Origin: Penicillus capitatus
Lineage: Eukaryota; Plantae; Chlorophyta
Direction: 5' to 3'
Assembly: GCA_965649825.1 (NCBI GenBank)
Contig: OZ287697.1
Span: 1-64,000 of the forward strand
Length of the DNA stretch: 64,000 nucleotides
Positions 6,001 through 52,967 of this stretch are shown here, piece by piece. The notes below the pieces were generated by a model. That model did not search any database and was not told where the DNA came from. It saw only the letters and a program-made list of their open reading frames with translations. The position numbers were made by a program, and so were the translations under genes. Positions within the stretch are counted from its first letter, which is position 1. Each line of letters starts with the position of its first letter.

Positions 6001-7593
6001 CGGTGATCGGCATCCGCGGTGTGTCCCGAGGCGTCCCGCACCCGTCTGCGTTGTAGTCTGCCGACGGTGGGCCCTCCGTCGGCCGCAATCTGCCGAAATG
6101 TCGAATCCGGAAAGGTCGCGCCACAGCCCGAGAACGCCGCCGCCGGGCTCCAACCAAGGGTCCGTCGGCATCCACTCGACCCCGCCGACACATCCCCGCC
6201 CTCGCTCGACCGTGTCGCCGGCTGCATCGTGCACTTCCGGATCGTACTGACAGGCCAGGTTACACCTGATGCGACGTAACGGCCACCATTTCAACTCCGT
6301 ACGACACCGCCCAGAGCCAAACGAGCCTCCGGTGATTGGCATCCGCGGTGTGTCCCGAGACGTCCCGCACCCGTCTGCGTCGAAGACTGCCGACGGTGGG
6401 CCCTCCGTCGGCCGTAGTGTGCCGAAATGTCGAATCCGGAAAGGCCGCGCCACAGCCCGAGCACGCCGCCGTCGGGCTCCAACCAAGGGTCCGTCGGCAT
6501 CCACTCGACCCCGCCGACACATCCCCGCCCTCGCTCGACCGTGTCGCCGGCGTCATCGTGCACTTCCAGATCGTACTGACAGGCCAGGTTACACCTGATG
6601 CGACGTGACCGCCACGATTTCAACCAAGTACGACACCGCCCAAAGCCAAACGAACCTCCGGTGATCGGCATCCGCGGTGTGTCCCGAGGCGTCCCGCACC
6701 CGTGTGCGTCGAAGATTGCCGACGGTGGGCCCTCCGTGGGCCGTGGTCTGCCGAAATGTCGAATCCGGAAAGGTCGCGCCACAGCCCGAGAACGCCGCCG
6801 TCGGGCTCCAACCAAGGGTCCGTCGGCATCCACTCGACCCCGCCGACACATTGCCGCCCTCGCTGGACCGTGTCGCCGGCGTCATCGTGCACTTCCAGAT
6901 CGTACTGACAGGCCAGGTTACACCTGATGCGACGTAACCGCCACGATTTCAACCAAGTACGACACCGCCCAAAGCCAAACGAACCTCCGGTGATCGGCAT
7001 CCGCGGTGTGTCCCGAGGCGTCCCGCACCCGTCTGCGTCGAAGATTGCCGACGGTGGGCCCTCCGTGGGCCGTGGTCTGCCGAAATGTCGAATCCGGAAA
7101 GGCCGCGCCACAGGCCGAGCACGCCGCCGCCGGGCTCCAACCAAGGGTCCGCCCGCATCCACTCGACCCCGCCGACACATCCCCGCCCTCGCTGGACCGT
7201 GTCGCCGGCGTCATCGTGCACTTCCAGATCGTACTGACAGGCCAGGTTACACCTGATGCGACGTAACCGCCACGATTTCAACCAAGTACGACACCGCCCA
7301 AAGCCAAACGAACCTCCGGTGATCGGCATCCGCGGTGTGTCCCGAGACGTCCCGCACCCGTCTGCGTCGAAGATTGCCGACGGTGGGCCCTCCGTCGGCC
7401 GCAATCTGCCGAAATGTCGAATCCGGAAACGCCGCGCCACAGCCCGAGGACGCCGCCGTGGGGCTCCAATTAAGGGTCCGCCGGCATCCACTCGACCCCG
7501 CCGACACATTCCCACCCTCGCTCGACCGTGTCGCAGGCAGCATCTTGCACTTCCAGATCGTACTGACAGGTTAGGTTACACCTGATGTGACGT
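1..7593. repeat. Tandem satellite array, 329-bp unit (23 full units plus ~25-bp degenerate partial); begins at the window edge
   Basis: Unit start GGCCAGGTTACACCTGATG recurs at 1, 330, 659, 988, 1318 and then every 329 bp to 7240; a partial copy starts at 7569. The unit at 988 is 330 bp (extra A). Unit 1 is 216/329 = 66% GC, versus roughly 45-50% in the rest of the window. Confidence 0.99.
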
Positions 7594-9403: not shown

Positions 9404-12400
9404 CTACTCTTTAATTTCAAGATGTCCTAGCAATCCAGGAAATTTCTCATCAAATTCTAGTCTTAAAACCGCAACAAAACGATCGATAGTTTCCTTACCC
9501 CATTTACCAATTTCTTGCGAAGAAGATGTATGCATAACAAAGGAAACAGTTTTAAATTCTGTGAAGTGATTTAGCGTGAATGAGTTTTGCATAAACACGA
9601 GTAGAAGACTTCCTTTACAATCAGAAAGAGAAGATATTGCTGATGGTATAGCTTGTTCGGGTTTTATGCTTGCTAGTGCAGTTCTGGCAGCATTGCGCAC
9701 ATCCAACTGTTCATCGACGCATCCCCTTGCTAACGTCGGCAAAAATACGCCAGTGTGCTGGGGAGCCGCCGCAATAACGCGGTAGATGGACTCCATCACC
9801 GCTTGACGCACGTTCCGGTGATTGTCGCTGTACCCCTTTACTAGTGCATATGAAACCTCGCCGGCTAGCTGCGGCACAGCTGTCAAGACACGGCCGATAG
9901 CTTCAATCGCCACTGGACGCACGTGCCGATGTTCGACACTGCACCCCTTTACGAGCGTCGGAAGAAGCTCGTCGGCGTTTTGCGGCGCCGCGACGATGAG
10001 GCGGCCTATGGCCTCCGTCGCCGCTCGACGTACGCGCCAAGCTTCGACACCGCACCCCTTTTCCAGCGTCGGGAGAAGCTCTTCGGCGTACTCCGGCGCC
10101 GACTCGACGATGCGACCGATGGATTCCATCGTCTCTTGAAGTAATTTCCATTCTTCGTCGCCGGTGTGCCTCCCCAGCCCCGATATAACCACACTGCCGC
10201 ATAAATCCGGCGGCATGATCGTAATGTCTCTGCACAGCCTCGCAAACGTTGGCATAACCTCGTCGGCGTGCTGCGGCGCAGCTGCGACAGCGAGTCCGGT
10301 GGCTTCAATCGCCGCTCGGCGTGCCTCTCGGTGTTCGTCGTAGCACCTCGTCGACATCGTCGGTGTAACACCGTCGGCGTGCTGCGGCTTAGCTGCGATA
10401 ACGTTATCTATATCTATAATCGCCGATCGATGCACGTCCCATTCTTCGCTGCACCACCCTGCTAGTGTCGGCAGAATCTCGGTGACTTGCTCCGGCGCTG
10501 CCGAGGCAACTCGGTCGATAGCCTTTATCGCCGATCGACGCACGCTCCAGCCTTCATGGACGCGCCGCTCTGCCAGCGTCGGCAAAACCGCTCCGGCATG
10601 CTCCGGTGCCGAAGCGACGACACGGCCGATGGCCTCAATCGCCACGTCACACACGTCCGGGTCTTCGTCATCGCACCAGAGCACAAGCAATGGCAAAACT
10701 TCGCTGGCGTGCTTGGGCACTTGTTCTGCGAGAAAAGTTAACCTTTTGATTGACTCCTTTTTTTTGCACCAACTATCCGGCTGTTTTAGTAGTTGCAATA
10801 CGAATTGAATTATTATGTAACTCTGCTTTGAAGAGTGCCGTGCAAGCCTCTGGACATCTACGATTTTCGCCATTTCTATCCATCTTAAATCATGAACACA
10901 TGCTAGTATTCTCTTTGCTTCATCAATAGTTCCACTGAGAATTTGAGGAAATCCTTCTAAAACGTGCGGCAACTGTTGGAATTTGTCCACCACGAGTTCA
11001 CGAATTATAACATCATCGATAGTACTTTCGAGGAGTTGCCTTGCGCTTTCGGCGAGCTTGATTGCTTGTTCGTTGTTCAGAAGATTTTTCAAAACGTAGT
11101 CGTCCGACTCTTCGAGAACTGCCTCGATAACACGCATCTTCAATAAAAAGTGTTGCAGCCCAAGAACTTCAACTGGTTGTTCGTTAACAATCGAAAGCAT
11201 GTGTTGCAGTGCGTCTTTTCCACGGGCTTTTCCATATGCGTGCATCGCGAAGTACATTGTCAAGTCGTTGTTCTGATTGTATTTTTCTTCTTGGATAAAC
11301 GTTAGTAGTCGTCTTTCTTCATCCGATTCTTTTCTCTTCAGGCTTCTGGCAATAAATCTTCCAGCAAAGTACTCTTGAAAGGTGAGATGAAGAAATTGAT
11401 ATCGTTCTTCCTCCAAAACGAATAGGAGGAATCCACTTTCATTGAAAATTCTTGTTGTGTTTGCGGATGTTACATGACTTTCAACGAATCGTTCTTCGAT
11501 AAGCATTTGTCCACTTCGAAGTCCCTCAAAGGCTATCTTCTCGAGGTCTTCGAAAATAGCATCCTTGTTTGCATTCCTTGCCTCTGCCTCTAGCTTTTCT
11601 TTAAACCTCTTCCATACAAAATTTGTCACGTCGTCGTAGATCTGAAACATGCTCGCTCTCTTCTTCCGATCTTCAATAGATGTACCATGTTCTCTAGCCA
11701 GATAACAGAGAATGTGTGCCGTCACTGGGGTATGTGCGGCTTCCCACATACCTCGATCTTGTTGCAAAGAACGAATGAGTCTCGAAGCTTCATCATATTG
11801 CAGTTCTTTTCTTATGTAGTTTTTTAGCTGCTGGTCATTGAATCCAAGACACTCAAACTGGCAGTCGACTTTTCTTTGTGTCCCTTGAAGATTGTATGGT
11901 CGCGCAAGTATCAGAAGTTTGCATTTACTTTTCTCTGCCTCGGAAAGGATCTCTCTGGCATCGTCATTGGCTTCGTCCAATCCGTCAAACACCAGCAATG
12001 TGCTAGATACATCGAGATCATCGTTGATTTGAGTCTTCAACTCTTCAATTCGAGCATGGCTTCTTTTTTGTTTGAAACACAATTGCGCGACCACTTCTTC
12101 AATACCCTCTCCCCGTACAGTTTTGATTTTTGTGAGGTTTAGACGTCTTATCGGAACCACGTAAATGGCTTTGAACTCTTGCAACATCTTTCCCAGTGCC
12201 CATTTGTGTGCAATGGCTTTGCTTATGCAAGTCTTTCCCGAACCGGGATTTCCATAAAGAAGAGCTCTTCGGATTTCGCTCTTGTCAACACCCGCTTCCA
12301 GTGATCTCGGCTTAAACAAGTCTTCTATCGAAATCGGTGTTGTGACCTTTTTCTTTTGTTCGTGGTATTCTTTCAGATCATCCCTTTTTTGTATTGCGAA

Positions 12401-14118
12401 ACTTTCCACTCCCATTTCATCTCCTTCTTCGTCCTTACGCCATTCTCCTCTTCTTTCAGTTCTTATTTTTTCGATGATCTCTTCGTACACAACAACATGA
12501 TGTTCCATATCCTTCACATGCCTACGGACATCTGATTCAAACAAGGAAGGCACCTTCAACACAACCACGGTCTCCGTTTGTTTTAAACAATATCAGAGGC
12601 ACTCACTGTGGCAAAGTTATCGTGTAGGTATGTATTCTTGAGGTCTTCGATGTTAGAACGAATAGTTGACGCATGCAGATATCCAACGGTTGTGCCTGTC
12701 TTAGCGAACAGTTCGTCAAGGTAATTGTTTGTATCTTTGTGGCATGACATCTGAAGCTTCTCTTCCATCGCATTGCCATTTAGCCAAGCTTTAAAAGTCT
12801 CTTTGGCAAGTTCATCGCATGATTGTTGTATTTTTTGAAGAGCTTCGGCTATCTCATGGTTTTGTTTGTCCATTGTGTAGATAAGGTGGAAGGAGTCTAA
12901 AATCCCGGTAAGAATGTCCGCATCGTGGATCCAGTTCTCGGAGATTGCTTGATTTGTTGTCAATTCGATAAGCTTCTTCGTCGCCTCTTTGCGGCTATCT
13001 TGACAGGAGTCTCTATCATTTGCCAGCAGCCTCAGTTCTTGAACGATACCAAATCTCAAGGCTTTTTGGTTATTCGCGTTTCTCGTTTTGCGTTGTCCTT
13101 CCGTCGCCGTGTCATATGCTAGTGCAAGGAGTTCGCATTTTTTCTCTTCCTTCAGCGCACTAAGCCTTGCCGCTGTTAAAATCTGAAGCACGTCATACCA
13201 CTCCTGCTCCAATACTCCCGCATTGGCGATTGCTGTTCGAACTTTTCTGTATGCGTCCTCAGTTGATGTAAGATCGATATCACCGCCGGCCAATTTTCTG
13301 AAAAAGTGGAAGACATGCACTCCACCGTAAAGACCGGCTATGGTACGTCTTTTTGCTTGTGTGAGAGCCGACGGGGCGTCTTCGATTTCCAGACGTTCAA
13401 CCGCTTGCTGAATAAGCTGGAAATGAAAGGAGACAGGATAGTAACGAAGAGATAGCTTCATCTCCTCTCTCTTTTCTGCGACTACTCTGCGAAACCCTAT
13501 CTTCTCTTCTTCGAGAAAATAGCCACGACCGATACTTTGTAAGAGGAATAAGATTTGATGAATGCAGAGAAAGTTTGCTTCGTATTTGAAAATGTTCTGT
13601 TTTGTGAGTCTGGGTCTAGAAGACAAGCTGAGCAAGAGGTCTAGACCCAGATCCGTCAGCTGAGCTGTGTCGTTGTAGACGGCAGAATCGACCCATGTGA
13701 ATGCGCTAAACAAAGCTTTTGCAACGTTCTCGGGGAGAAATTTGTCGGGATGGATTAGGGAACCGAGGCCATCAACCAGTTTTCTCAGAATCTCTGCATC
13801 TTCTTCGGAAACATATACGACTTTGGCTAATTCTGCATACTCAAGTACCGCCTCCGGATTGAGGCAGTCAGTATTTCCTTCGCCATACTTGCGTAACCAT
13901 CCAAGAAGAACGGTTCGCTCGTTCTCATCCGTCACGGCATTGTATGCCGAGACAAGCGACTTCGTGCACATGATATTGTACTTCTTCGCGACAGCGCGAA
14001 GGAGCTTTGGTCCATTTCCCTGCTGGACGTTGAGGTCTGGTGAGTAGCGTTTGCTGCTACTTCCCGACGCGGACGGTCCTTTAACGGACTGTTGTTTGTT
14101 AGAGAATCGTGACTGCAT
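9404..14118 (-). CDS. NLR-like STAND NTPase: N-terminal helical/ARM-like domain + NACHT + C-terminal HEAT repeats (~1553 aa, 2 exons)
   Basis: The 511-aa and 1054-aa ORFs join in frame through a 53-nt GTGAGT...TTGAAG intron (12554-12606), giving HDNFAT|VPSLFES. Walker A GNPGSGKT, Walker B LLVFDGLDE, NACHT winged-helix motif FLHLTFQEYFAG, then ~9 HEAT repeats. Confidence 0.9.
9668..10717 (-). repeat. Coding tandem repeat: ~9 x 37-aa (111-bp) PBS-lyase-like HEAT repeats within the NLR-like gene
   Basis: Recurrent PxHAxxxLPTL.xxC.DE.W.VRR.AIEAIGRV.xxA pattern, visible at DNA level (e.g. CGGCGTGCTGCGGC, GCTTCAATCGCC). One repeat carries a ~20-aa insertion. Confidence 0.9.
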
Positions 14119-18828: not shown

Positions 18829-18930
18829 CTGGTCCCGAACCGCGGCTCAAACGGATCTGAGGGTCCAAAATGACGGCGCTGGTCCCGAACCGCGGCTCAA
18901 ACGGATCTGAGGGTCCAAAATGACGGCGCT
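18829..18930. repeat. Perfect 50-bp tandem duplication
   Basis: CTGGTCCCGAACCGCGGCTCAAACGGATCTGAGGGTCCAAAATGACGGCG occurs twice, head to tail. Confidence 0.97.
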
Positions 18931-27919: not shown

Positions 27920-30580
27920 ATGCCGGTAGTCAAGAATCCGAAGCGAAGAGGATACATCCACAGGACCTCATCGACTTCAGAGTTTGCTTCACACGTTGTC
28001 ACACGGTCACCTCTGGAAACGAAGGAGTTCGGAAATCGAATTGCAAACGCTCCATCCAGAGAAGAGCCTCGCTTCTGTTATCGTACGATTTTCTATTCGT
28101 ATTGTGTGCGATCTGTGAACGGTGACTGTTTGTCGCAGAATGAAGTGTTAGAGGAAGAAGAACATCTCCAGCTGCTTAAAAAGACACCACCGTTTCGAAT
28201 TGATCCCGAAGGGACATTCAAGGCAAAGTGGGATGTCTTCATGCTTTTCTTAGTCTACTACGTCAGTCTGGTCACTCCACTGAATCTGGCATTCTTTTCC
28301 AACGAGTCGACGCATCGAGACTCCCTCATCGAATACCAGGTAGCCACGTTCTGTCTTTCTTCTCTTCTCAGCTCTGAAGGAAATGATGACACATGTCATG
28401 TAGCACGAATTCTCTCAAAGATGTCAGAGCAATGATGAGGCCCACGGTGCCATCACGAGTTTTGCAGAGATCGAGTACATACCTGATTCAAAGCTCGCCT
28501 CCTGAAATGGATGCTTACACAGATTTATCATCTTCCTCCAACAACCACCCACGGCCTACAGAGTGCTTGATATTGCTGTGGACGTTCTCTTCTGGATTGA
28601 TTTGATCCTGACATTTTTCGTCGGGTTCAAGCCGAATCGGAGCCTCGATACCGAATACGATCTGAAGAAGATCGCCAATCGATACCTTCGGCGCTGGTTC
28701 CTCCTGGATTTTATTGCCGTCCTGCCCATCGATCGCATTGTCGATGCCACTGTATCAAGTCTGAACTGAGCCATTGGAGAATCATGCAATTCCTTCCTTG
28801 TGTTATGTCTGGACAGAAGGAAGCGTTCAAGTGCAGGTTGTCAAATTGACGCGTCTTCTCAGACTCTCTCGCCTGTTGAAGAGATTCGGGGAACTCATGG
28901 CGTCAAAATCATTAAGAATTGTTTATTTGCTTATCCTGTACACCACGATCGCACATTGGATCGGATGTGCCTTTTTCTTCTCGGTAAGAAATGCGTGTCT
29001 CGTCTTTCTCAGATGACAGACGAGGCATTCCTGCTCAGGGCAGATGGCAGGTGGAGAATCTTCAGAATGGAGGGGCCAATGCTTTTACAGGCAATCCATG
29101 GCTGATGGATCAGTGCCTGCAATTCGCCAACTTCCGCACGCAGTACTGCATGTCTCTTTACTGGGCTTTTACGACAATGACCACGGTGGGGTATGGAGAT
29201 GTTTTGCCGACAACAAACATTGACAGGTGAGGCTTTCTTCAATCTCTGTTGAGACCTTTGTTCCGTCCGTCTTGAATACGTTTCGTGCGCTTTCCTATTC
29301 TGAACGAGTTTGTGGATGCAGAAACATCGCCTGTATTGTCATGATCGTGGGAGGCATCATTCAAGCGATCATTTTTGGAAATGTTGCCATTCTTATACAA
29401 ACGATGGGAGAAGCCAGGAAAAGACTGGAGAACAAGCTCGACGTCGTACAAGAATTCCTCACCTTCCACGGACTTCCAGAAAATCTCACGCAAAAAGCCA
29501 TGGATGCCATCGAGTATTCCTGGAACTATTCTCAGGTATGCAAAAAGAAAGAGATCGATAGATCTCCCATTGCCAATGACGCATTTGAAGGGAATGGACG
29601 ATCGTTCCATTTTGGCGGACTTCCCAAAGGCCTTGCAAACAGATCTCATGATCCAGACGCAATCTCACATTGCACCCGTTTTCAAAGAATTGAGTGAGGG
29701 ATTTCGACGCGCCATCATATCGCACTTTCATCTGAAGATATTCGTTCCAGACGAGTGCATTATTCATGTCATTCTCCGACTTGCATGCAGGACTCTTCGT
29801 TCTGATGGGACATTTGTTCAGGCGGGAGACACTGGTGCAGAAATGTATATCATCAGAGATGGCGAATGTGTTGTCCTCTCGCCCAATGAGAGAACGACAC
29901 TGGCTCTACTGAGATCTGGGAGCTTCTTTGGTGATATCGATTTGATTCTGCGGTCACGAAGAACGGCAACTGTCAAGACACGAACATACTGTACGATGTT
30001 TGTTCTCAAGAGGTCGATCAGCTCATGCTTCACTCACAAAGACATACACAAGAAACAAACTGTCACCTCATACAGGGAGGATCTTGAGAATATCTTGGAA
30101 GAATTCCCAGGACACAAGACAACGCTCATTGAGAGCACAAAGAGAAGAAGAGACATGCAACAACAGAAGAATGCTTCATTCACTGAGTTCTTGAAGTGCT
30201 TGTATCTTCCTCTAAAATTCTGGTTGGACTGGTTGCAGATGCCGGAGACAGCAAGCATCCACAAACAACGACGAATCAGAATTGCTTATCTGTGCATCTC
30301 AGCGCCATCCATCCTCATCTTCTCACCTTCCCTCAGTACTCTTTGGCCAACTGCTAGTCGGCGTACTCAGTCTTCTGGTATCGTGCAGGAAACAGAAAGG
30401 CACGAGCCTATGCTTGACAATGCAGATCGACTCAATGAGCTGTCCGCCAAAACGATGGAACAGCCACCGAATGTGGCTCCTTTCCATCATCTGGAACCAC
30501 TTGCACACACTCTAAGTCACCCAGTCTTCAGTCCGGCACAAGATTTCTGCTCGTCAGACAGTTTCGATAGTGCCGATTAA
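27920..30580 (+). CDS. Voltage-gated K+ channel with cyclic-nucleotide-binding domain (KCNH/Shaker-CNBD type)
   Basis: S1 KWDVFMLFLVYY; S3 YLRRWFLLDFIAVLP; S4 KLTRLLRLSRL; pore SLYWAFTTMTTVGYGD; CNBD AGDTGAEMYIIRDG…GSFFGDIDLILRSRRTATVK. C-terminal exon boundaries are uncertain. Confidence 0.92.
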
Positions 30581-43090: not shown

Positions 43091-44705
43091 ATGGCGACCT
43101 CCTTTCAGGTGTTAGAGGAGAGAGACGTCGAAATTGAGCGACTCGAGGAAGAGAGTCGAAACCTGAAAGAAGAGTTGAGACATAAACAGAAGGTCCAGAT
43201 TCTGGCGAGATGTCCTCATTGAGGCATTGCTTGCTTCCACCCTACTTCAGGATGTCGACGATGCTCAGAGAAAGATTGACGATCTGCAATTTTCTATCGG
43301 ACAGATGCAGCAAGAGAAAGTGATTTTCCAAGCAGAGACGAAGGCGAAGCTCGAATCGTGCGAATCTGCCATGGGCTCAGAGAGAAACAGAATGTGTATC
43401 GTTCGAAAAGCACATCAATCATGATACGAGTTGTAAGTATAGGCGTGACTTCGTGTTCGAGATGCACGAAGCCGTGCAAGAGGCACATCAGAAGTTTCTG
43501 TCGGATCTCAAACTCCAAAAAGAAAAGCACTCGAAGGAAAAGGAGCAGATGAGGGGCGAGTTGTTAGAGATGTCACACGAACTGGAGGAATTGAAAGCGC
43601 TGAATTTAAAGAAGGAACGAGCAATGGACGATAAAGAGGAACAAGTGCGGCCAACCAGATTTATCCTTTCCTTCACGTCTTGACTGCTTGAATCGTCGGT
43701 GCAGAGGAAAGAACAAGAACAGCAGATTCTGGAATTGAGAGACCAGCTGGAAGGGGCATCGTTGCAAGTGCGTCACGTAACAGAGAACAGCAAAGAAGTA
43801 CAATTCGTTTAACAGTGACTCTTGCTACTATCGATGGCATAGCACAGGAGAACGCCCGGTTGCTTCAGATGGTGACCGAGAAAGACAGTCGACTTCAAGT
43901 TTGGAAGGACCCTTTTGGCGACAGTTCCATTTACACTGGTTCGCAGGATCTCGAAAACGAGATGAAAGGACTAAGGGAAATCGTAAAGGAGCATTCGACG
44001 TTCTGCCAAGAGCAAGACTCGATACAGGATCGAGTACGGGACAAAGAAATGGAACACCGCAAGGAAATTGTCCAGCTAACGATGAAACTGAGACAGCAAG
44101 AGGGACAGTGCATGTCGTTACAGAAGCAACTGATCGTCGTCAGAGAGGAACAGGCAACACTCCAGGTGCTATCTTCTCTTCGAATGAGAGCCATCACGTC
44201 GCTCTTGCAGAAAGAGCATAAAGATCTCGAAGGGGCTTTGGAGAGAACGATGGAACAGAACGAGGATCTAAGAAAGCAATTGGACAAAGCCGCACGTTAC
44301 GTGCAACGCAAGAAGACATCGATGCATTCGGAAATCACAGATCTCCAGAGTCGACTGGTCAAGAAAGAACACCAGGTAACGCCGCCGTGACGATCTAGAC
44401 CTCGACGTGATGTGTTGTCTTTAGAATGAGATATTGAAAGCGGAAGGCAGGAAGGAACAGCATAGACGGCGAGTACTAGAGAGGGAACTGCATACAAGGC
44501 AGAAGAAAGAAGCACGACGGCATCGCAAAACGACGGAATTGAATGAGATGCTGGCTGTTCTGGAGGCAAGAGAATGCACAACTGTCTCTTTCTCTCTCGA
44601 TGCATGTGCTGCTGACAGAGCGAAGCAGACAGCCAGACCTTATCAGGGGAGCAGTTCTCGGTCACTAAACGAAGTCCAATACGAGAGAAGTCGCGTCCAT
44701 CGTGA
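43091..44705 (+). CDS. Long coiled-coil protein, family not identified
   Basis: E/K/Q/L-rich heptads across multiple exons. The predicted last intron is GC-AG (44566-44618). Confidence 0.7.
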
Positions 44706-44755
44706 TCCCGAAGAAATAGATTGCTTTCATTCTCGACATCTTTGGCGTTGAGAAG

Positions 44756-46084
44756 ATGACCTCTGTTGCGAGAAACACCATGTCTGCTCGATACCAAGTC
44801 ACTTGGTCTTCCCACGCAAGATCTCCAACGCGCTCGCCGAGTTTTTCGACGCCGTTTGTCTCTCGCATTCGCCAAGCGGCGAGTAGTCATTCCAGGATCA
44901 CTAAATCGCTGTCGAAGAGAGACCCTCGTGATCGCGCATCTGTTCGCGCATCGCTACGATCAGAAACTGAAATCATCAGCGCGCCATTGACATCAGGTTT
45001 CCTTTCCGTTTCAGTTCACTGAGTCTTGACCTGTCCGATGTTCTTCAGAATCCCCCAAGCAGGGAGATGCTCCATGCGGAAATGGCCTCGTTTCGAAGAG
45101 CGATCTTCTTTCATTGGAGAATGAGCTTTCACAGGGAGAGTCCATCAAAGCGCTTGCCAAATTCAACAATGCTCTTCGTCAACTCGATACATCGAACTGG
45201 GGTACACATCGGAACACAGAAGCCGAGATCTCAGTCAAACTGTGCGCCCTATAGAAGCAAAGCTCAAGCCTGTCTTCAAAGAATGGTGTTTCAATTTGGA
45301 ATCCTTCAATCCTGCATTTGCTGCCGTTCTTCTCCAGGCATTGCCAGCGAGATCATAAAGATCACATCAGATCATGTATGTTGTGTTTAGGTTCAACTGA
45401 GTATTGGCAAGAGTGATTACTATCGTCGAGATGACTGCTTGAGGTGTCTTATACAGCCATTGGCCGGAGAATATGGAATGCACAATAATGAACCTCAAGG
45501 TAAGCAAGGAAGTTAAGTGGGATGTTCTGAGTGTTCTCTCAGGGAAGACACATCGACAACTGTTCAAGGAATTCTTCGAATCGCTCTTTCCCGATTCTTC
45601 TCTAGACGTGCTGCTGGATTCAGAGCCTCTTCATGGAAAGACGCTTTTCGAGAAAATGATCCATGATATCCAATCTCATGGTACTTTCCTGTTGTCCTTG
45701 TGCTCTGAAGAAAGGTTTCGCACAGGCAATGATCCGATTGAGAGAGCGAGCTATGCGTTGGGATACAACCTGGCTATCGAGTATTTGGCAGATTATGAGA
45801 AGCGATGGATGCTACAATCCTTTCGACAGCTTTCGTCTGGGGCGATTCAAAGAGACATCGCGTGGCTCTTTCTAGAAATCCACGCTGAAGGCAGGATCAT
45901 TCTATGAGCGCCCGTCATACACATCTTTGACTGTTTAGATGAGAAAGAGCATGCGGCGATTGGACACGAAGCCGTTCTCAGCTTCGTCCCCTCGTCACAT
46001 CTAGCATTGCTGCAGAAGGCAATGCAGGACCATGATCGAGACTTTGCTGTTTTCTACAATCACCTTGCCTCGATGCTGAAGTAA
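44756..46084 (+). CDS. Plastid-targeted heme-oxygenase-like diiron enzyme (CADD/PqqC/TenA-like superfamily)
   Basis: Ser/Arg/Thr-rich N-terminus; LAGEYG…KTHRQLFKEF, ALGYNLAIEYL and FLEIHAEDEKEH (H-x3-E-x2-H). Two GC-AG introns (45338-45390, 45891-45938) are needed to keep the frame. Confidence 0.72.
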
Positions 46085-46366
46085 AGGCGAAAAGAGAGTA
46101 TGTTTAATGAATGGATGCACGCATGCCATCTGAGTGGATGCCTAGACAGGGACTTTCCAACAGATACAAATGGGAGATCAGGTTGTTGTACTTAAAGAAC
46201 AGCGTCCGGCTTAAGAACAAACAATAACTGTCAGGCAAGAGAATCAGACTTCGATGCTCCAGAGTAATCGTCGTGATAGGCAGCGTGACAGCGAGAAAAG
46301 TATTCTTGTCTGCAGCGATGATGGCTTTCTTAGCAGAAATGAGATCTTTTGAATCCACGAAATTTC

Positions 46367-47562
46367 TCATCTCAAAATAGACTTGTCGAAATCATCAGGT
46401 ATCAGCTCGGATATCCATTGTTTCAACTTATGTATGTGCTCTGCTCCGGCATGTGCACCTCTCAGGTCATAAAGAGTGCACAACGTTCGAATGAGGGGTT
46501 CCTAGATAACAAAGATATCGCTCGATTTGGGATCACGGCGATTATTTGTGGACCTACCTGTATGTGCTTGAACGGCTTAGCGTTAAGATTGCTTTGCACA
46601 GTATGGATTGCTGCTTGGTTGTTGCACCGGAGCAGTTCACAGATGCTCTTGTTATTCGCAGCCACTGCATGGATGTCCGAATCACTCGAGACCTTGTCAA
46701 AGTGGCTAATGGCCCCTGCAGTGATGCATTTATCGTCTGTATGACGACACATCTGAAAACAATCGCTAACCATTGTAGTCTGCCTCGGAATAGGAACAGA
46801 GTCCAGCAATCGTACTGGACAGATCTGGATTCGTCAGTTTCTTCCTTGTTTCCCTTGCATGCTCGATATCCCCAAGCATCAACATAATACAGCAGACAGC
46901 GAACCATGCCTACAATGACATCATCCGATTTCTTTCGTTTGGAAAGATTTCGATATACCCTTTGGTTTTCGGCATCCATGGTCAGCAGTTCATTCAACCA
47001 CTTGAGTGTTTCTATGTAGTCCTTCATCTGACTGTAAATATTGACCACACACCAGATCACTATCTCACGTTTTCTTTTATCCTTTCCCACAGTCTCGTAT
47101 AAAAGAGACAGGCGATCCATTGCCATTCTTGGATTGTCCATGAAGAATGGAAGCAATGCATGGAGCAAACGAACCCCGAACGAGCAGGCTGAACACATAT
47201 ACTTGCATCTGTGCTTCTACTTCCTTCGATAGCTTACTTGAAATCGAAGCCTCCAGTTTTTCGAACTCCTCTGCTGCTTTCTTGTACTTGCCCATTTTGA
47301 AAGTAGCCAACGTCAGATAGGTCTTCTTTGCGACATGGTCGTCAAGACCACCGTGCAGAATCTCGTCTTTCGCCTCCAGTATGGCATTCCAGCAACCCTA
47401 GACGACGACGGCGTCTTCGTTGACAGTGATTCGGGCACTCTGTCGCTTTACACGAAGAGCAAGGGCCTGTAGTCCTGGCAAATCGAAGCGAACGTCTGTC
47501 GTGGGTCGCAACAGAACGGCCGACCATTCTTCTTCAAAATGAACTTTTTGTAGAGGATGCAT
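46367..47562 (-). CDS. TRAPPC12: Trafficking protein particle complex subunit 12 (TPR protein)
   Basis: GLQALALRGCWNAILE, FGVRLLHALLP…MDRLSLL, AANNKSIC, TLCTLYDL…DDFD. Confidence 0.8.
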
Positions 47563-47586: not shown

Positions 47587-50500
47587 TTACACATGAGGTA
47601 TACTCTCGTGTACGTCATCATGTTGCCCGAGTTCTTTCATCACATTGAAATAGGGAGCGAATTCGGGCACAGATGAAAAGTCCTTGTAGATCTCCTCCCA
47701 CAAGTGAGAACGTTTCAATTGAAAACTGACGACGACAGGCATGTGCTGTAGCAACAGTGCCAAAGCCAGTGACCACGTGTCACATCTGTGCGCAAGACAT
47801 GGTGTGAATGGGGAAGCGCAAGAGCTAAATGGATGTACCTGGCGTGCTGACAGATTTCAAGGAGTAGTTCTGCATCGCTGTGCAACTGTTCCGACGACAG
47901 CTGTATGTGCACTGTCATCATTGCCGAATGGATACTGTCTTTTGTCACGGTTTCCTTCAACACATCTTTGTCTGTGCAATAACCCTAGAAACAGCGACAG
48001 TTAAGTATCCCCAGAGCGTTTTCATTAACAGCATACCATTAATGCTGGCAGGCCACCGCCCAGTGACGAGACAGACTGTGCAAGTGCCAGCAATGGCTGT
48101 AGTTGGCTAAACTCTAGCAGACACCATACATGTTCGCGCACGACCTGGACAGAATCGATCTCGAGCAGTTAAGAGTGGGTGGGCACAGCACCTTTGCCGC
48201 TTCCAGACTGGCTCCAGACAACACAGGCTGCTGATGATCTGGAGAGCTTTCTTGCCCTTTGTCATCCGATCCTCCCCACATCCATGAAAACCATGACGAT
48301 AAGCTCCCCTCTGTTGTAGCAGCTGGCGAAGTATTTGTGACGGTTCCTTTCAAAAAGATACGATCGAAATCGGATTGTGTCACGGCATAGCGCAAGAGTT
48401 CTGCCACCAACGCATACTCTCCACCTGACAGAGCGACTTGAAGCACTTGCAGTGCCAGTGCTCTCGCCAGAACACTCCCTTCCATCTTATCAATCACGAC
48501 CAACAGACAAGCAGCCGAATGTGACGCCCCTAAACAAAGAGCATCCGGATAATCAATATACATCATGCAAGAAGTACCAACCTTGATTCAGTAGAGTATC
48601 CAGCACTTCACTGGGACGACCAACAACGTCAAACAGCAATGGCCACAGCTGAGCATCCGTCTTCCTGGCAACACTCACGACCACGTCTGGATACTGAGAG
48701 AAGTCTTTGACAAGTGCTGTTGCCAAAGACAGGAGAGATCTGTCTGGTTTTGAAGAGCCCTAAGCATAGAGCGCACCATTGCAATGAAAGTAAGTCGATC
48801 GATTGCGCAATTACTGTGGAAGGATGATGTCTCTTGTCTTTCTTTGATGACTCTGTTGCTGCCTGAAACTCCAATGCAGTAAAGAGGAGCCATTCCAGAG
48901 ATTTTGAGAAATGCAGTCCGACCTTCTGGTGCTTTCTCGCCAACAGTTTCGCCTCCTTCATGACAAACATCTGTGAAAACTACGACTTCGCATGGTGCAT
49001 CACCTGCACAGCTCCTCTTTGAAGCAATCGACGAAGCAGGCATGGCAACACAGGTTGTGTGTCTGGCATTGGAGAGAAGCATGGAAGCGACAATGAAGGC
49101 GATGCTGATGGATCTGAATTGCATGCTGGTGGACGAACGAGGCGTTGTGAGACTCCAATGATGGCTGCATCTGCCAAAGAGATGCCGATTGGGTACACCT
49201 GCGAAGAACAAAACCTTGATCACAAGATCCTTTCTTGTCTTCCACATTCGTAGCACGCACCTCCCGATCAAATTCCAGTTCAGGATCTAACTGTCCTGTG
49301 ATGGCGTGGCCCGTGGACGGAATGCGTCTTGGCGATAAAGGTTCTGACAAAGATGAAGGAAACCAGAGTTCCATGCCACGCACACCGTATGCCCACCATG
49401 GCATTTCAACCATGTTGACTGCCTGTCGATTGCGTCCAGCACACGGCAGTTCTGAATGTCCCATCGAAAGCGATGGAAGAATATAAGAAACGGCCGTGGT
49501 TGAATTAGCTGGAACTTTTGTGGCATCGCTCAGCCAGAAGCATTCCACCTCGCTTGCCAAGAACTGTTCAACGCCTTTCTCCATGTCCAATAGTGTCATG
49601 ACACCGCCCCAACGCAACACGACACACTGGTCTGGAACCTTGAAACCCATCCAGAAACAGCATATGAGTTGGCAGAAGAAGAACATGTCACGACTGAAAT
49701 GCACCTCACCTTTGAAGAATCGTCAGATGTCTTCGTGAGCGATACATTGAAGAGGGGACGTTGCAAACTCAGAATCGACAGTTCTCGCAGAGGAAGCAAG
49801 GTTGCTGTGGCCCTTGTTGATTTGGTAAGTTCTCCTTCGATCTGACATTCGTAGAGAGCGATATCCAGTGGCTCTGAGGCAACTAAGACGTAGCGGTCTA
49901 AACAGTCCAATGCCACTGGAGTGTGCTGCAACTTGTGGCGGAGCAAAAGTGATGCAAAGTCCAGATGATAGTGAGGGAAAAGGAGCAAGTGGGATTTTCC
50001 ATCTTCTGCGTTCGAGCAAACGACGATGATCTTGCAAAGCCAGTTGATAAGGGACGCAGAAATAGACTTCTCCTGGCTCACATCTCCAAAGAGCTTCCAT
50101 TTCTGTGTTCGTCGACTGTAAACGGCCAACCCATGTCGACCTGCCATGGCAATATCGGAACCGTCTGACGAAACGGCGGCCACTCTGAAAGGCCAGTTTT
50201 CAGAAATGTATTCCTGAGGTGCTTGTATGTGCCGGACAGTCAGTTGACTCTCCGAGAACCGGGAATCCAGGAGACCAGCATCGACACCATTCTCTCCATC
50301 CTTCCCTCTCTGAAACTCTGAGATAAGAAGCAGGCGATCGTCTCCTTGGAGAACGTGCACTTCTTCCAATGCTGCCTCAGATGGCTCCCCTTGTTTTTCA
50401 GATGGATGAGAAACTCGGTGGCGTCCGGACAAGGAACGCACAAATCTCAATTCCCAAAACTCTTTTGCATGGCCTGTCTGGCCGACCCACAATCGATATC

Positions 50501-52218
50501 CATCCACTCCCCATGCCAGAACAGATACTCCCCATTCCAACGTGGGAGTGTCGATGTCAAACGAGCCAGAGAGATTGGCTCTGTGTCCTGGTGTCTCAGA
50601 CTAGAAAGAAATCATAGAAGTGACATAGCGTGTGATATACTTGTGGGATGTGCCTACCCTCGATTCCTCGTTCGTTCTTCCTGAGAACCCTATCTTATCC
50701 GTCGTTCGAGAATTGATAGCCGTTTTCGTTGAACTGAGAGCTGTCTTTGGTTTCAATGGGGTCTGCGGCAATGAACACATCAAGCGACACCCAGAGGGTG
50801 TCCATACAACGATTCCTCGTTGCCGAAATCCCACAGCAAATGCCGTGCAATCCCCACTCCAACATATGTCCTGAACGGGACCTGTTCGCCAAACCACGTC
50901 TTGCGTGCGTTGAGCCATGTATTGTGCTGCCTGTAATTTCTGGCCCATGTCCCCAATCGGAGAGATTGAGCCTTCTGACTGGACTCGGAACAGGAGTGCT
51001 GTTTTCCTCGGACGACTGCCCAAAGATACCAAATGTCTCTGTCAACCTAAGGACAGCTGAGATATCCATCAGGCAGTCAATCGTGGTTTGCCTGAAGAGA
51101 ATGACCGTTCCATCAGTGCACCCAACAGCAACCATGTTTGCACAGTCTCCGATCCGAGCACAAGTCACTTTGTAGCTCTCTGCTCCTGAAGTGAAAACGC
51201 AAGGATGACAGCATTGAGCTTGTTTATTTCGAGAAAGGAGTCTACCTTCATTGATCCACTGATTTACGTGCAAGCCTTTCATTGAAGCATCTGCCGTGTG
51301 GCAGAGGCCGGTCGAACCATCTTCGAACGTCACTGCCAATCTTTCAACGCGACTGGAATAATCCATATCAACAATTGCTCCTTTCGAGATCTTGTTGCCT
51401 GAAAAGTAGACCGTCGGATCACTCCTCAGAGCGTGGTACTTCTCTCTGATCACTCGATGAGCATTCAGGACTGGCCAGAATGAAAGGGCTTCCGGAATCC
51501 TCAGCAGAATGCGGAGTTCTCTCCATACTCAGCAGATCCAGGCATCCATCAAACCAATTGGGAATCTCTGTAGCGAGTATTCATTGAGAGGCAAGATATG
51601 CGAGCAGCTTTGCCTTCATCGTGAAATTCATACACCTCTTCCGGTTGCAAATTCTCATTCATCTTTGGCCAGTCATAGATTTGAAGCATCCCATCTCCCG
51701 TTCCAATCATCACGGATGAACCCATTGTCACCAAACAGTTGCCGATCTAGCCAAGAATCGAATCGATCAGCGCAAGTCATTGTTGATAGCACGTGACGTA
51801 CAGAACTGCCAAACAGTTGCACAGTGGCATGCACGGTCATCCTGACAGTGGTGGCATCGCGCAGAGGACCGGAGACTGACGGTCTGTTGACCAGTTTCTT
51901 CCCCGTTGAGGTGACAGAATATAGAAGTATCCATCCCTTTGCCGTCAAGCAGATTGCACTGGAGAGTTGTGCATTCCATTCTGCCGCAACCTGGGGACCT
52001 AATCTTAGCAGCTCTTTAGGTGGAAGGAACATCTGTCCAAGTTTAAAGGGATTCTCTGTTCCTGCCCACAACTGCACGGCGCGTTTTGAGGCCAAGAAAG
52101 TGGTGGGGAATGAGAAGAGGGGTGAAGAGGGATGTGTGAGGCAGGAAACGATTTCATCGTGTCCGTATTTGGCTGGGAAGGCGATGTAAGATTTCGGCCA
52201 ACCACATGGAAACAGCAT
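47587..52218 (-). CDS. RIC1: RAB6A-GEF complex partner RIC1
   Basis: N-terminus MLFPCGWP; WD-like region; MWVQLYGDDHWTV-type WPFRVAAVSSDGSDIAMAGRHGLAVY…KWKLFGDVSQE segment; VVVSVARKTDAQLWPLLF; C-terminus DAELLLEIC…WSLALALLL. Confidence 0.9.
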
Positions 52219-52401
52219 CTCGACGCTGAACAAACGCAACGTCTGCGCGTCGTACGTTGTACGTCACAAATGCCCAACTATCTCTGTGCAGTCCTGTTTG
52301 CTTTACTAGCACTCTCTTGCACGTCGTGTCCCCTTGAGAAGCGTTGCTTCGTTACACGACGCCTTCGTTAACGAGATTTCGTCATTGTTACCAATACTGA
52401 A

Positions 52402-52967
52402 ATGTCGGCGTTGAACAAAGAGACGCCAGATTCGAAATGGAAAGAGATTCTAACGACCACCGAGGTCCGTTTTAATACAAGGCAGTTGAAAGACACGTTT
52501 TTTGAAGCACTTGTGTCTGTTTACAGTACCAGGTTCTGCGAAAAAAAGGAACAGAACAACCAGGTACAGGTGAATACAACAAGTTTTTTGAAGAAGGAGT
52601 ATACAAGTGTGCGGCCTGCGGGGCTGAGCTCTACAAGTTCAGTTCACTCGATCGAGTTTATGCACGTCGCTCACAATGTTGGATACAGGTCGGAGACCAA
52701 ATTTGATTCCGGATGCGGCTGGCCCGCCTTTTATGATGAAATCCCAGGCATGCATGATCATTCTTGTTTGCGAACCACAATGGCCAACGATTTATAGGAT
52801 CTGTTAAGCGAAGGGAAGATGTATCGATGGGAATGGCCCGGACAGAGATCACGTGTTCCAATTGCGGCGGGCACTTGGGCCATGTATTTGTGGGAGAGGG
52901 CTTCAGAACACCAACAAATGCCCGACATTGTGTCAACAGCGTGTCCCTCAGATTTTCAAAGAAATGA
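52402..52967 (+). CDS. msrB: Methionine-R-sulfoxide reductase MsrB
   Basis: [51 protein letters not shown]. One intron is GC-AG (52748-52797). Confidence 0.96.

Follow-up and report, generated by a model that had tools for sequence, protein, structure and literature searches.

The window, i.e., the whole stretch of 64,000 nucleotides that was analysed, contains a nuclear gene which probably encodes a plastid dimetal oxidase of the HDO type (heme-oxygenase-like dimetal oxidases). The gene is one member of an old, conserved and unstudied pan-chlorophyte family, and neither a one-off nor peculiar to this genome. From the conserved residues, the predicted fold, the presequence and the bacterial relatives we infer metal binding, O2 chemistry, a stromal location and a class of substrate. 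The sequence-only reading, which had proposed a plastid-targeted HDO at this locus, is supported by the gene model, the fold, the invariance of the putative ligand set, the character of the N-terminus and the distribution of the named members.

Gene model and splicing

The coding region and its features are listed in Table 1. The spliced coding sequence of 1035 nt gives a protein of 344 amino acids, referred to here as the HDO-like protein. All introns are short (52, 53, 53, 43, 45 and 48 nt for introns 1 to 6); four have GT-AG borders, while introns 3 and 6 are of the GC-AG type. In an alignment of the spliced protein with 17 homologues, zero indels occurred at every exon junction, and this gap-free alignment fixes both GC-AG junctions, which read AVLLQ/VQ and HAE/DEKEH. 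Across the site of intron 6, the homologues show HAEGEAEH or HAEDEKEH without a gap. The unspliced open reading frames of the locus terminate within introns and, since H294 on one side and E298 and H301 on the other flank intron 6, the H-x3-E-x2-H motif is present only once the transcript is spliced.

Intron positions 2–4 are common to Elliptochloris and positions 3–4 to Bryopsis; in the case of intron 3, both algae have an exon junction at the equivalent alignment position (within 1–3 residues). Intron positions shared with other green algae identify the gene as an old nuclear resident and not as a contaminant. The locus is a real seven-exon nuclear gene, and the intron-containing version suggested from the DNA alone is confirmed with six introns. 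Its neighbours in the window are ordinary, unrelated nuclear genes, encoding a coiled-coil protein, RIC1, an LRR protein, organellar L19, MsrB, GNAT, CYTH and a cNMP-binding channel, and no functional clustering around the gene was found within the window.

Table 1. Coordinates of the gene for the HDO-like protein, its exons, the two GC-AG introns and the codons of the putative metal ligands (positions in the window).
Feature	Position	Strand	Description
Whole coding region	44756..46084	+	7 exons, 6 introns, 344 aa; stop TAA 46082-46084
Exon 1	44756..44996	+	Residues 1-80, bulk of the transit-like peptide
Exon 2	45049..45201	+	End of presequence and first conserved helices (L-E-x-E-L, RRFN-like motif)
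Exon 3	45255..45337	+	N-L-E147-S-F-N-P helix
Intron 3	45338..45390	+	53 nt, GC-AG; junction set by gap-free alignment
Exon 4	45391..45499	+	Y169, R172, P-L-A-G-E186-Y-G motif
E186	45469-71	+	Putative ligand 1, C-terminal end of first half of interrupted core alpha1
Exon 5	45543..45680	+	T-H199-R200; R200 invariant
H199	45551-53	+	Putative ligand 2, at start of helix after E186
Exon 6	45726..45890	+	Y-A-L-G-Y255-N-L-A-I-E260-Y-L-A-x-x-E266 and F-L-E-I-H294-A-E
E260	45779-81	+	Putative ligand 3, core alpha2
H294	45881-83	+	Putative ligand 4
Intron 6	45891..45938	+	48 nt, GC-AG; interrupts H-x3-E-x2-H; retention leads to in-frame TGA
Exon 7	45939..46084	+	E298 and H301, then invariant H328-D329 and Y336 on last helix
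E298	45941-43	+	Putative ligand 5, core alpha3
H301	45950-52	+	Putative ligand 6, core alpha3

Predicted fold and putative metal ligands

For the mature domain (residues ~90–344), AF2 gave a model with a pLDDT of 94.8 and a pTM of 0.91. According to the model, the protein has the all-alpha (seven-helix) heme-oxygenase-like fold, which is shared by the HDO superfamily (UndA, BesC, SznF, RohS, AetD, PolF, HrmI, FlcD, CADD), and dimetal HDOs are its nearest neighbours among solved structures. Foldseek assigned a probability of 1.00 to CADD, Npun_F6505, PolF, BesC and UndA with TM values of 0.61–0.77, and an earlier full-length model returned the same set. The best matches in size and topology are CtCADD from Chlamydia (CT610; 1rcw/8va9, TMt 0.73–0.77) and Npun_F6505 of Nostoc punctiforme (3b5o, TMq 0.70, TMt 0.75), together with TMt 0.73–0.77 and an rmsd of 3.5–4.3 Å, followed by PolF (TMq 0.67–0.69), BesC (0.65/0.71) and UndA (0.67). 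TenA homologues reached a TMq of 0.53–0.58, and the heme oxygenase HmuO merely an E-value of ~0.05 and a TMt of 0.54 with the earlier model. The kinship with CADD and related HDOs expected from the DNA alone thus agrees with the ranking, in which dimetal HDOs stand ahead of TenA and heme oxygenase.

At the sequence level, the sole Pfam family match is PF14518, ‘iron-containing redox enzyme’ (Haem_oxygenas_2), with 21.5 bits and E 2e-4, which is below the gathering cut-off of 28.9. This family is matched by 8 of 18 family members at E<0.01, and a precomputed PF14518 match is on record for some of the orthologues and for many proteins of the bacterial sister group. Canonical heme oxygenase (PF01126) is absent in the Pfam search, and the first invariant His of the family is H199, while the proximal His of a heme oxygenase would be on the first helix. 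Sequence searches against solved structures, with phmmer for the protein and hmmsearch for the profiles A1, A2 and A3, gave chance matches only (uL23m, PsbH and R2lox with E 0.66); the identity of the protein to any solved HDO is 12–15%, with no HMMER-detectable similarity. As there is no HMMER link to solved HDOs, the ligands are assigned from the order of the motif, its place on the helices and the class of fold, and not from a residue-by-residue superposition.

HDOs are defined by a set of three His and three carboxylate ligands (3H/3C) on the core helices alpha1–3, with E...H on alpha1, E on alpha2 and H-x3-D/E-x2-H on alpha3 (PMC13108848, PMC7848743). The six putative ligands of the HDO-like protein are located on successive predicted helices in this order in the AF2 models, and all six are 100% invariant in 94 sequences, comprising 29 eukaryotic sequences and 65 bacterial relatives, so that the pattern read from the spliced gene beforehand is present throughout. 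The predicted ligand set fits the 3H/3C definition (PMC13108848). The spacing of 13/61/34/4/3 residues runs parallel to 10/56/30/4/3 in SznF, whose ligands are E215, H225, E281, H311, D315 and H318 (PMC7848743). Differences from SznF, the only HDO used for this comparison, are the Glu instead of Asp as second residue of the helix 3 triad and the 12-residue loop between E186 and H199, which is longer than that between E215 and H225 (PMC7848743). In the first model, the helix bearing the H-x3-E-x2-H motif is broken at residues 297–298, a feature shared with core helix 3 of the superfamily. The helix bearing H-x3-(D/E)-x2-H is a mobile helix in HDOs.

UniProt names some of the orthologues ‘Thiaminase-2/PQQC domain-containing protein’ and TenA structures are found lower in the Foldseek list, which would suit an enzyme with this fold but no metal, either a thiaminase II (aminopyrimidine hydrolase) of the TenA type or a cofactor-less oxidase like PqqC, with the His/Glu pattern as a substrate-binding surface. 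However, we regard this as scarcely credible. All of the HDOs match better than TenA does (TMq 0.65–0.70 for the HDOs), the TenA/PqqC family PF03070 (TENA_THI-4) is absent in the Pfam search even at E<=10, and a search of NCBIfam gave no match. Furthermore, no Cys is invariant in the family alignment and hence the TenA nucleophile is absent, and neither TenA nor PqqC is characterised by an exact His/Glu/His triad at i, i+4 and i+7 with three more invariant residues of ligand type in the order of the HDOs. The exclusion of a TenA-type hydrolase, on which the sequence-only reading depended, therefore holds with regard to both the Pfam match and the Cys.

An HDO scaffold does not necessarily carry dinuclear chemistry, as mononuclear variants of the fold exist, which have lost two of the ligands of core helix 3 (PMC13108848). 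The algal protein could accordingly be a mononuclear-iron enzyme or a plastid metal-sensing or metal-buffering protein, and HDO clusters are labile. We give this only a slim chance, because all three helix 3 residues, H294, E298 and H301, are invariant, and the invariant pocket-type residues Y169, R172, R200, Y255 and Y336 argue for a specific substrate. Around 17 positions are invariant across the family and its bacterial relatives. Among the acidic and His residues, E147, E266, H328 and D/E329 are invariant in addition to the six, which distinguishes the algal protein from the superfamily and leaves room for an alternative ligand set. E147, which is invariant in the 94 sequences, is located on the helix 131–161 preceding core alpha1 and could be a seventh ligand. 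N-oxygenase HDOs of the SznF and RohS type possess such a 3H/4C set, with the extra Glu on the auxiliary helix alpha2 by means of a beta-turn insertion (PMC7848743), whereas the helix with E147 is predicted to be continuous and without a turn insertion.

Distribution, bacterial relatives and probable targeting

The database search yielded 198 homologues of the green lineage (best E 9e-95, 61% identity), which excludes chance when taken together with the complete conservation of the six residues. Named members are found in Chlorophyceae, Trebouxiophyceae, Ulvophyceae, Pedinophyceae, Tetraselmis, Pyramimonas, Cymbomonas, Dolichomastix, Prasinococcus, Amorphochlora and Dinoflagellata sp. MGD. Among the named matches, there are thus only lineages with green plastids, including secondary and tertiary hosts such as the chlorarachniophyte Amorphochlora and the dinoflagellate MGD. 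The identity kept across the green algal classes is ~45–60%. In a neighbour-joining (NJ) tree, the HDO-like protein groups weakly with Ulvophyceae (Ostreobium, Bryopsis, Ulva); the orthologue of Dolichomastix is only 50% identical and does not group with it, for which reason the idea that the window might come from a low-GC outlier chromosome of a mamiellophycean alga (Mamiellophyceae) was rejected.

The nearest non-eukaryotic kin is a bacterial group named ‘iron-containing redox enzyme family protein’ (hhalign 99.8%, E 8e-29, 26% identity over 231 columns), with sequences from Actinomadura, Nostoc sp. UHCC 0870, Cyanothece sp. SIO1E1, Phormidesmis, Byssovorax and Elusimicrobia. This sister group shares every putative ligand as well as E147, Y169, R172, R200, Y255, E266, H328 and Y336 with the algal family. 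In contrast, its proteins comprise 233–270 amino acids without an N-terminal extension, are patchily distributed and are themselves uncharacterised, and their genes adjoin NRPS, aminotransferase, cupin or transporter genes. A phylogeny had been suggested for finding a bacterial donor, but none can be named; in the NJ tree, a long branch sets the bacterial relatives, cyanobacteria included, apart as a clade of their own.

Judging from composition and model, the first ~88 residues resemble a transit peptide for import into an organelle. Residues 1–88 are disordered with a pLDDT below 50, residues 1–55 contain 0 acidic and 10 basic amino acids, and residues 1–70 contain 24% Ser. The stretch encoded by exon 1 shows no sequence conservation with the homologues in the alignment, and the alignment with the bacterial relatives starts near residue 107. 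The transit-like peptide noticed beforehand is consequently recovered as a Ser/Arg-rich, non-conserved extension that is acid-free up to position 55.

The enzyme is probably targeted to the plastid, although composition alone does not separate plastid from mitochondrial targeting. Presequences of green-algal mitochondria and chloroplasts are alike in composition and an Arg-rich, acid-free N-terminus suits both, so that the same enzyme could be mitochondrial or dual-targeted; the literature search found no experimental localisation. For the Chlamydomonas orthologue, Cre05.g238200, neither this name nor the accession numbers gave a literature text match (‘g238200’ matched soybean and sorghum genes), and the supplements of the TurboID proxiome paper and the chloroplast atlas preprint, two studies of the Chlamydomonas chloroplast, do not contain it; likewise, the Volvox orthologue had no literature match by locus or accession. 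A location outside the plastid nevertheless appears unlikely on three grounds. The named members track green plastids, including the secondary acquirers Amorphochlora and the dinoflagellate MGD. The N-terminus of the copies from MGD and its relatives is a hydrophobic signal peptide, which is what a complex plastid would lead one to expect and a mitochondrion would not. Finally, ASVRA/S in the presequence resembles the V-x-A motif of stromal processing, and orthologues possess VxA-type sites, too.

Putative reaction and comparison with characterised HDOs

For a plastid HDO-type oxidase, the presequence would be cleaved off after import into the stroma and the helical bundle would bind two metal ions (Fe2, or Fe/Mn). 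Core helix 1, which is interrupted, would provide E186 and H199 as metal ligands, core helix 2 would provide E260, and core helix 3 would provide H294, E298 and H301. The reduced cluster would then react with O2, probably after substrate binding, to form a peroxo-bridged intermediate which oxidises a small molecule.

The type of this molecule may be reflected in the bacterial neighbourhoods and in the invariant R172 and R200. In two independent bacterial loci (L005, L014), the HDO gene lies between those of an AMP-binding enzyme and an NRPS; elsewhere, a DegT-type aminotransferase precedes and a cupin follows it (L003), or it is followed by an EamA transporter (L001) or a DcuC transporter (L012). 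Natural-product-type neighbourhoods of this kind are also known from the HDO superfamily. No consistent operon partner was found in the bacterial loci, as their neighbourhoods are heterogeneous: the NRPS cassette occurs twice, and the other loci have transporters, the aminotransferase together with the cupin, or uninformative neighbours. Together, the two Arg residues and the neighbouring adenylating enzymes with NRPSs, the aminotransferase with the cupin and the small-metabolite transporters point to a polar, carboxylate-bearing, amino-acid-like substrate, although weakly, since the neighbourhoods vary and the proteins in them are merely 23–29% identical to the HDO-like protein.

A substrate of this type would resemble that of PolF, the diiron azetidine synthase of polyoxin biosynthesis (9pj2, 9j3v, 9prr) and the top Foldseek match of the full-length model. 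PolF acts on a free amino acid, which chelates Fe1 by its amine and carboxylate, and has no bridging carboxylate (PMC12614342). The amino-acid type of substrate is suggested for the algal protein by R172/R200 and the NRPS-linked relatives, but the identity to PolF is 12–14%, and PolF is encoded in a biosynthetic gene cluster of Streptomyces, not by a conserved gene of the housekeeping type.

The closeness in fold to CtCADD and the CADD-like protein from Nostoc, which have a 3H/3C set of the same kind, raises the question of a self-sacrificing p-aminobenzoate (pABA) synthase, in which an Fe:Mn cluster would cleave a Tyr of the enzyme itself, with a Lys as amine donor, to supply pABA for plastid folate. 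Candidates for both residues exist, namely Y169, Y255 and Y336, which are invariant in the 94 sequences, and K267, which does not vary within the eukaryotic clade. However, K267 is not kept in the bacterial sister group and sequence similarity to CADD is undetectable. In CtCADD, the sacrificial Tyr27 is located in the N-terminal helix region with Lys152 nearby (PMC9522330), whereas residues 95–168, the mature N-terminal helices of the algal family, contain no invariant Tyr and have F119 as the conserved aromatic residue, positions being compared by alignment region only. A conserved counterpart of the sacrificial Tyr is therefore lacking in the algal family, and we consider a CADD-type reaction very improbable. 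Besides, pABA is made in green algae by way of the usual ADC synthase, which leaves no obvious need for another route limited to a single turnover.

A further-reaching reading of the HDO-like family, which we put forward tentatively and would not yet favour, is that of a eukaryotic, organelle-resident HDO clade, i.e., a stromal enzyme across Chlorophyta and secondary and tertiary green plastids, whose O2-dependent reaction, with a small metabolite that bears a carboxylate or resembles an amino acid, would be unlike the about one dozen validated HDO reactions. The named enzymes among those with a validated reaction stem from bacterial secondary metabolism or, in the case of CADD, bacterial folate synthesis. 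A conserved HDO in green-algal plastids, encoded by an intron-bearing eukaryotic gene with a transit peptide, would differ from them. A limited look at the literature found no earlier description of such a clade. According to the HDO mini-review of 2026, the superfamily occurs ‘in a myriad of bacterial species’; the words eukaryote, plant and alga are absent from this review (PMC13108848); in a word search, eukaryotes were unmentioned both there and in the 2021 survey of ~9,600 sequences.

Strong conservation and retention through secondary endosymbioses point to a role in primary metabolism, which is not mentioned in the HDO reviews consulted. If this reading is true, it marks an unassigned step in green-plastid metabolism; if a metabolite found only in green plastids is formed or broken down by the enzyme, a reaction is added to algal biochemistry as well as to the HDO repertoire. 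The gene in the window, taken alone, is one more orthologue, and Cre05.g238200 provides a tractable model of the family. Two specific reactions were considered and rejected: carotenoid C19 hydroxylation, because a soluble protein with two invariant Arg is unsuited to a carotenoid, and DMSHB decarboxylation, because the DMSP producers do not match the distribution of the family.

Gene structure and surroundings

The interval 44756-46084 on the forward strand consists of short open reading frames in shifting frames, and the gaps of 43-54 nt between them carry splice-site ends. Joining the seven exons yields a coding sequence of 1035 nt and a protein of 344 aa, referred to here as the window protein. 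Four of the six introns have GT-AG ends, and introns 3 and 6 are GC-AG. In an alignment with 17 homologues, the spliced model was gap-free at every junction, and the residues joined across the two GC-AG introns, AVLLQ/VQ and HAE/DEKEH, are among the best-conserved of the family. If intron 6 stayed in, a TGA would come next and, since this intron divides the H-x3-E-x2-H motif, the motif is present only after splicing of the transcript.

Coordinates of the gene for the probable heme-oxygenase-like dimetal oxidase (HDO) and of other features in the window
Feature	Position	Strand	Remark
HDO exon 1	44756-44996	+	
HDO exon 2	45049-45201	+	
HDO exon 3	45255-45337	+	
HDO exon 4	45391-45499	+	
HDO exon 5	45543-45680	+	
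HDO exon 6	45726-45890	+	
HDO exon 7	45939-46084	+	
HDO intron 3	45338-45390	+	GC-AG, by homology
HDO intron 6	45891-45938	+	GC-AG, by homology
Candidate intron, upstream coiled-coil gene	44565-44617		GC-AG, 53 nt, GCAAGA...ACAG, judged by eye only
ORF downstream of HDO	46104-46370	-	ends 19 nt past HDO stop codon
RIC1	48114-52239	-	several exons
RIC1 intron	about 50600-50665		GT-AG
MsrB/SelR domain	52402-52797	+	
Ribosomal protein L19	62953-63378	+	bacterial-type (organellar)
Cyclic-nucleotide-binding protein	29375-30580	+	
Tandem satellite	1-7593		329-bp unit, 23.1 copies, 94% matches
296-aa ORF	697-1587	-	across satellite repeats, probably spurious
1054-aa ORF	9404-12568	-	NACHT NTPase domain and HEAT repeats
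511-aa ORF	12583-14118	-	no Pfam match
Tandem duplication	18829-18930		50-bp unit, perfect, 2.0 copies, 100% match

With two homology-based cases in the HDO gene and a third candidate upstream, GC-AG introns seem common in this genome, and the introns seen are without exception very short (43-62 nt), that of RIC1 among them. Genes are packed extremely tightly around the HDO gene (44698-44756 and 46084-46104): the stop of the upstream forward-strand ORF lies at 44751 (about 44703 with the candidate GC-AG intron), leaving 5-55 nt to the HDO start codon. With such spacing, the UTRs must overlap or be very short. The neighbours are ordinary nuclear genes unconnected with HDO, and LRR, GNAT and CYTH proteins are encoded elsewhere in the window; the nearest relatives of a RIC1 exon are only 62-63% identical. 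The satellite has a GC content of 66%, compared to about 47-49% in the remaining window, and is adjoined by two long unbroken ORFs (9404-14118, reverse strand), which are intronless, unlike the other genes with their many short introns.

Putative ligand set, fold and family assignment

The six-ligand pattern proposed in the sequence-only reading was found in the spliced model as E186...H199 / E260 / H294-x3-E298-x2-H301. When 29 eukaryotic and 65 bacterial sequences were aligned together, all six residues were 100% invariant, as were E147, Y169, R172, P182, R200, L202, Y255, E266, H328 and Y336, and residue 329 is acidic throughout (Asp in algae, Glu in 98% of the bacteria). The putative ligands follow the order of three His and three carboxylates (3H/3C) on core helices alpha1-alpha3 that defines the HDOs (PMC13108848), and their spacing of 13, 61, 34, 4 and 3 parallels that of SznF with E215/H225/E281/H311/D315/H318 (PMC7848743). 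In the AlphaFold2 (AF2) models, E186 lies at the end of one predicted helix and H199 at the start of the following one, in agreement with the "loop/turn interruptions" that core alpha1 is reported to have in SznF. The helix carrying H294, E298 and H301 breaks at 297-298 in the first model; it corresponds to the mobile helix of HDOs. A ligand set with an additional carboxylate (3H/4C) is the signature of N-oxygenase HDOs, and the invariant E147 may be a seventh ligand of this kind, although its predicted helix is without a beta-turn insertion.

Sequence searches gave little assignment: the only Pfam match was PF14518 "iron-containing redox enzyme" (E 2e-4, 21.5 bits, under the cut-off of 28.9), the window protein had no match in NCBIfam or, with HMMER, among PDB sequences, and the family profiles reached none of the PDB sequences either. 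AF2 modelling with an 18-sequence alignment was confident for residues ~90-344 and left 1-88 disordered; an alignment of 37 sequences covering the mature domain gave a pLDDT of 94.8 and a pTM of 0.91. When the models were compared with the PDB by Foldseek (TM-scores for query, TMq, and target, TMt), dimetal HDOs ranked highest, which bears out the predicted heme-oxygenase-like fold. These included CtCADD (TMt 0.73-0.77), the Nostoc CADD-like protein Npun_F6505 (TMq 0.70, TMt 0.75, rmsd 3.5 A), PolF (TMq 0.67-0.69), BesC, UndA, HrmI and RohS; TenA homologues (TMq 0.53-0.58) and the heme oxygenase HmuO (E ~0.05) ranked lower. Sequence identity to all these matches is 10-16%.

The TenA-type alternative raised in the sequence-only reading found no support: there was no match to PF03070 (TenA/PqqC), and the family has no invariant Cys. 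A canonical heme oxygenase was likewise rejected, with no PF01126 match and no invariant His ahead of H199. Another possibility within the same fold is a CADD-type self-sacrificing pABA synthase. Such synthesis requires a conserved N-terminal Tyr (Tyr27) plus a Lys (PMC9522330), whereas the family has no invariant Tyr within residues 95-168, and K267 is conserved in the algal clade only. The window protein belongs to no functionally assigned HDO subfamily. It does show the features of HDO membership that can be checked in silico. It is likely to have the HDO fold and a complete set of dimetal ligands, and it is predicted from sequence and models to work like an HDO.

Distribution, probable targeting and history

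A large protein collection contained 198 homologues (best E 9e-95, 61% identity across the C-terminal 73% of the window protein). The spliced window protein itself is missing from it, which is explained by the prokaryote-type ORF calls on its eukaryotic contig. The named matches are nearly all green algae: Chromochloris, Tetradesmus, Chlamydomonas, Volvox, Haematococcus and Dunaliella; Chlorella, Coccomyxa, Trebouxia and Elliptochloris; Ulva, Bryopsis, Ostreobium and Neomeris; Tetraselmis, a pedinophyte, Pyramimonas, Cymbomonas, Dolichomastix and Prasinococcus. Two more occur in hosts of secondary or tertiary green plastids, the chlorarachniophyte Amorphochlora and the dinoflagellate strain MGD. 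Streptophytes, red algae and diatoms were absent from the named top matches. Some gene models of Chlorella ohadii and Chlorella vulgaris (P0041 / P0133) fuse HDO with a peptidyl-prolyl isomerase of the Pin1 type (PF00639); since other models of the locus separate both, the annotations were probably merged and the fusion is not a true one. In the metagenomic protein P0137 (JGI, 610 aa), a signal-peptide-like N-terminus is followed by two tandem HDO domains of this family, both complete; a natural fusion or duplication in a complex-plastid alga could account for it.

Residues 1-55 of the window protein include ten basic and no acidic residues, and residues 1-70 contain 24% Ser and 17% Arg with a net charge of +11, as opposed to -11 for the mature domain. 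This extension is lacking in bacterial relatives and unconserved between orthologues; in those of complex-green-plastid organisms (strain MGD, P0138, P0137), the start is hydrophobic and signal-peptide-like. The acid-free, Ser/Arg-rich and predictedly disordered character of the extension in the window protein agrees with the transit-like peptide proposed earlier. Given this character and the distribution, a plastid location is the best reading, and the protein likely acts there; a literature search for the Chlamydomonas orthologue gave no localisation data. The complete description, a plastid-targeted HDO-type dimetal oxidase, is reasonably probable, and the sequence-only reading was supported overall.

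Introns 2, 3 and 4 follow residues 131, 159 and 195, and at tblastn resolution exon junctions coincide with all three in Elliptochloris and with introns 3 and 4 in Bryopsis; this dates the gene's residence in the nucleus to before the split of their classes. A bacterial donor did not emerge from phylogeny: the neighbour-joining (NJ) tree unites the eukaryotic sequences in a single clade, set apart from bacteria by a long branch, and no donor can be named because the cyanobacterial sequences are not its specific sister. Within the clade, the tree weakly suggests a grouping of the window protein with Ulvophyceae.

HDO members number more than 10,000 "in a myriad of bacterial species", with about a dozen validated enzymes, according to a 2026 mini-review in which the words eukaryote, plant and alga are absent (PMC13108848); a 2021 SznF study surveying ~9,600 sequences does not mention eukaryotes (PMC7848743). 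Database labels for the algal family are only "hypothetical", "iron-containing redox enzyme family" or "Thiaminase-2/PQQC domain" proteins. Taken singly, the window gene is ordinary, and it points to a eukaryotic HDO clade of which we found no study. This algal family is conserved, plastid-associated and worth study in its own right. A model organism for testing it is already at hand in Chlamydomonas reinhardtii, whose orthologue, Cre05.g238200 (PNW83650.1), carries the annotation "hypothetical".

Bacterial relatives and putative reaction

When 1.84 billion representatives were searched exhaustively with a profile, 529 matches were returned, mostly metagenomic exon fragments. A few were short bacterial proteins (233-256 aa) without N-terminal extension, with relatives in Actinomadura, an Elusimicrobia MAG, Phormidesmis, Byssovorax, Nostoc sp. 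UHCC 0870 and Cyanothece sp. SIO1E1. Profile-profile comparison joined the algal and bacterial groups with a probability of 99.8% (E 8e-29, 26% identity). At two independent loci, in a Byssovorax MAG (L005, 5597-14403) and on ENA contig_75235 (L014, 4017-12732), an AMP-binding (adenylating) enzyme lies directly upstream of the HDO relative and an NRPS downstream, and in L014 a cupin/AraC-like gene precedes the cassette. The cassette may belong to a natural-product pathway and is a candidate for assigning a substrate to the bacterial relatives. Elsewhere, a DegT-type aminotransferase precedes HDO and a cupin follows (L003), or a transporter comes directly after it (EamA in L001, DcuC in L012); further neighbourhoods were uninformative.

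In the most probable mechanism, the algal protein would be imported into the stroma and lose its presequence, after which the six ligands would assemble a labile Fe2 (or Fe/Mn) cluster; substrate-triggered O2 addition would give a peroxo-level intermediate that oxidises a small molecule. The invariant R172 and R200, together with the bacterial gene neighbourhoods, suggest a polar, carboxylate-bearing, amino-acid-like substrate, although its transfer from these neighbourhoods to algae is weak because the bacterial relatives are 23-29% identical. Both arginines could be carboxylate anchors. In PolF and AetD, Fe1 is chelated by the amino-acid substrate (PMC12614342).
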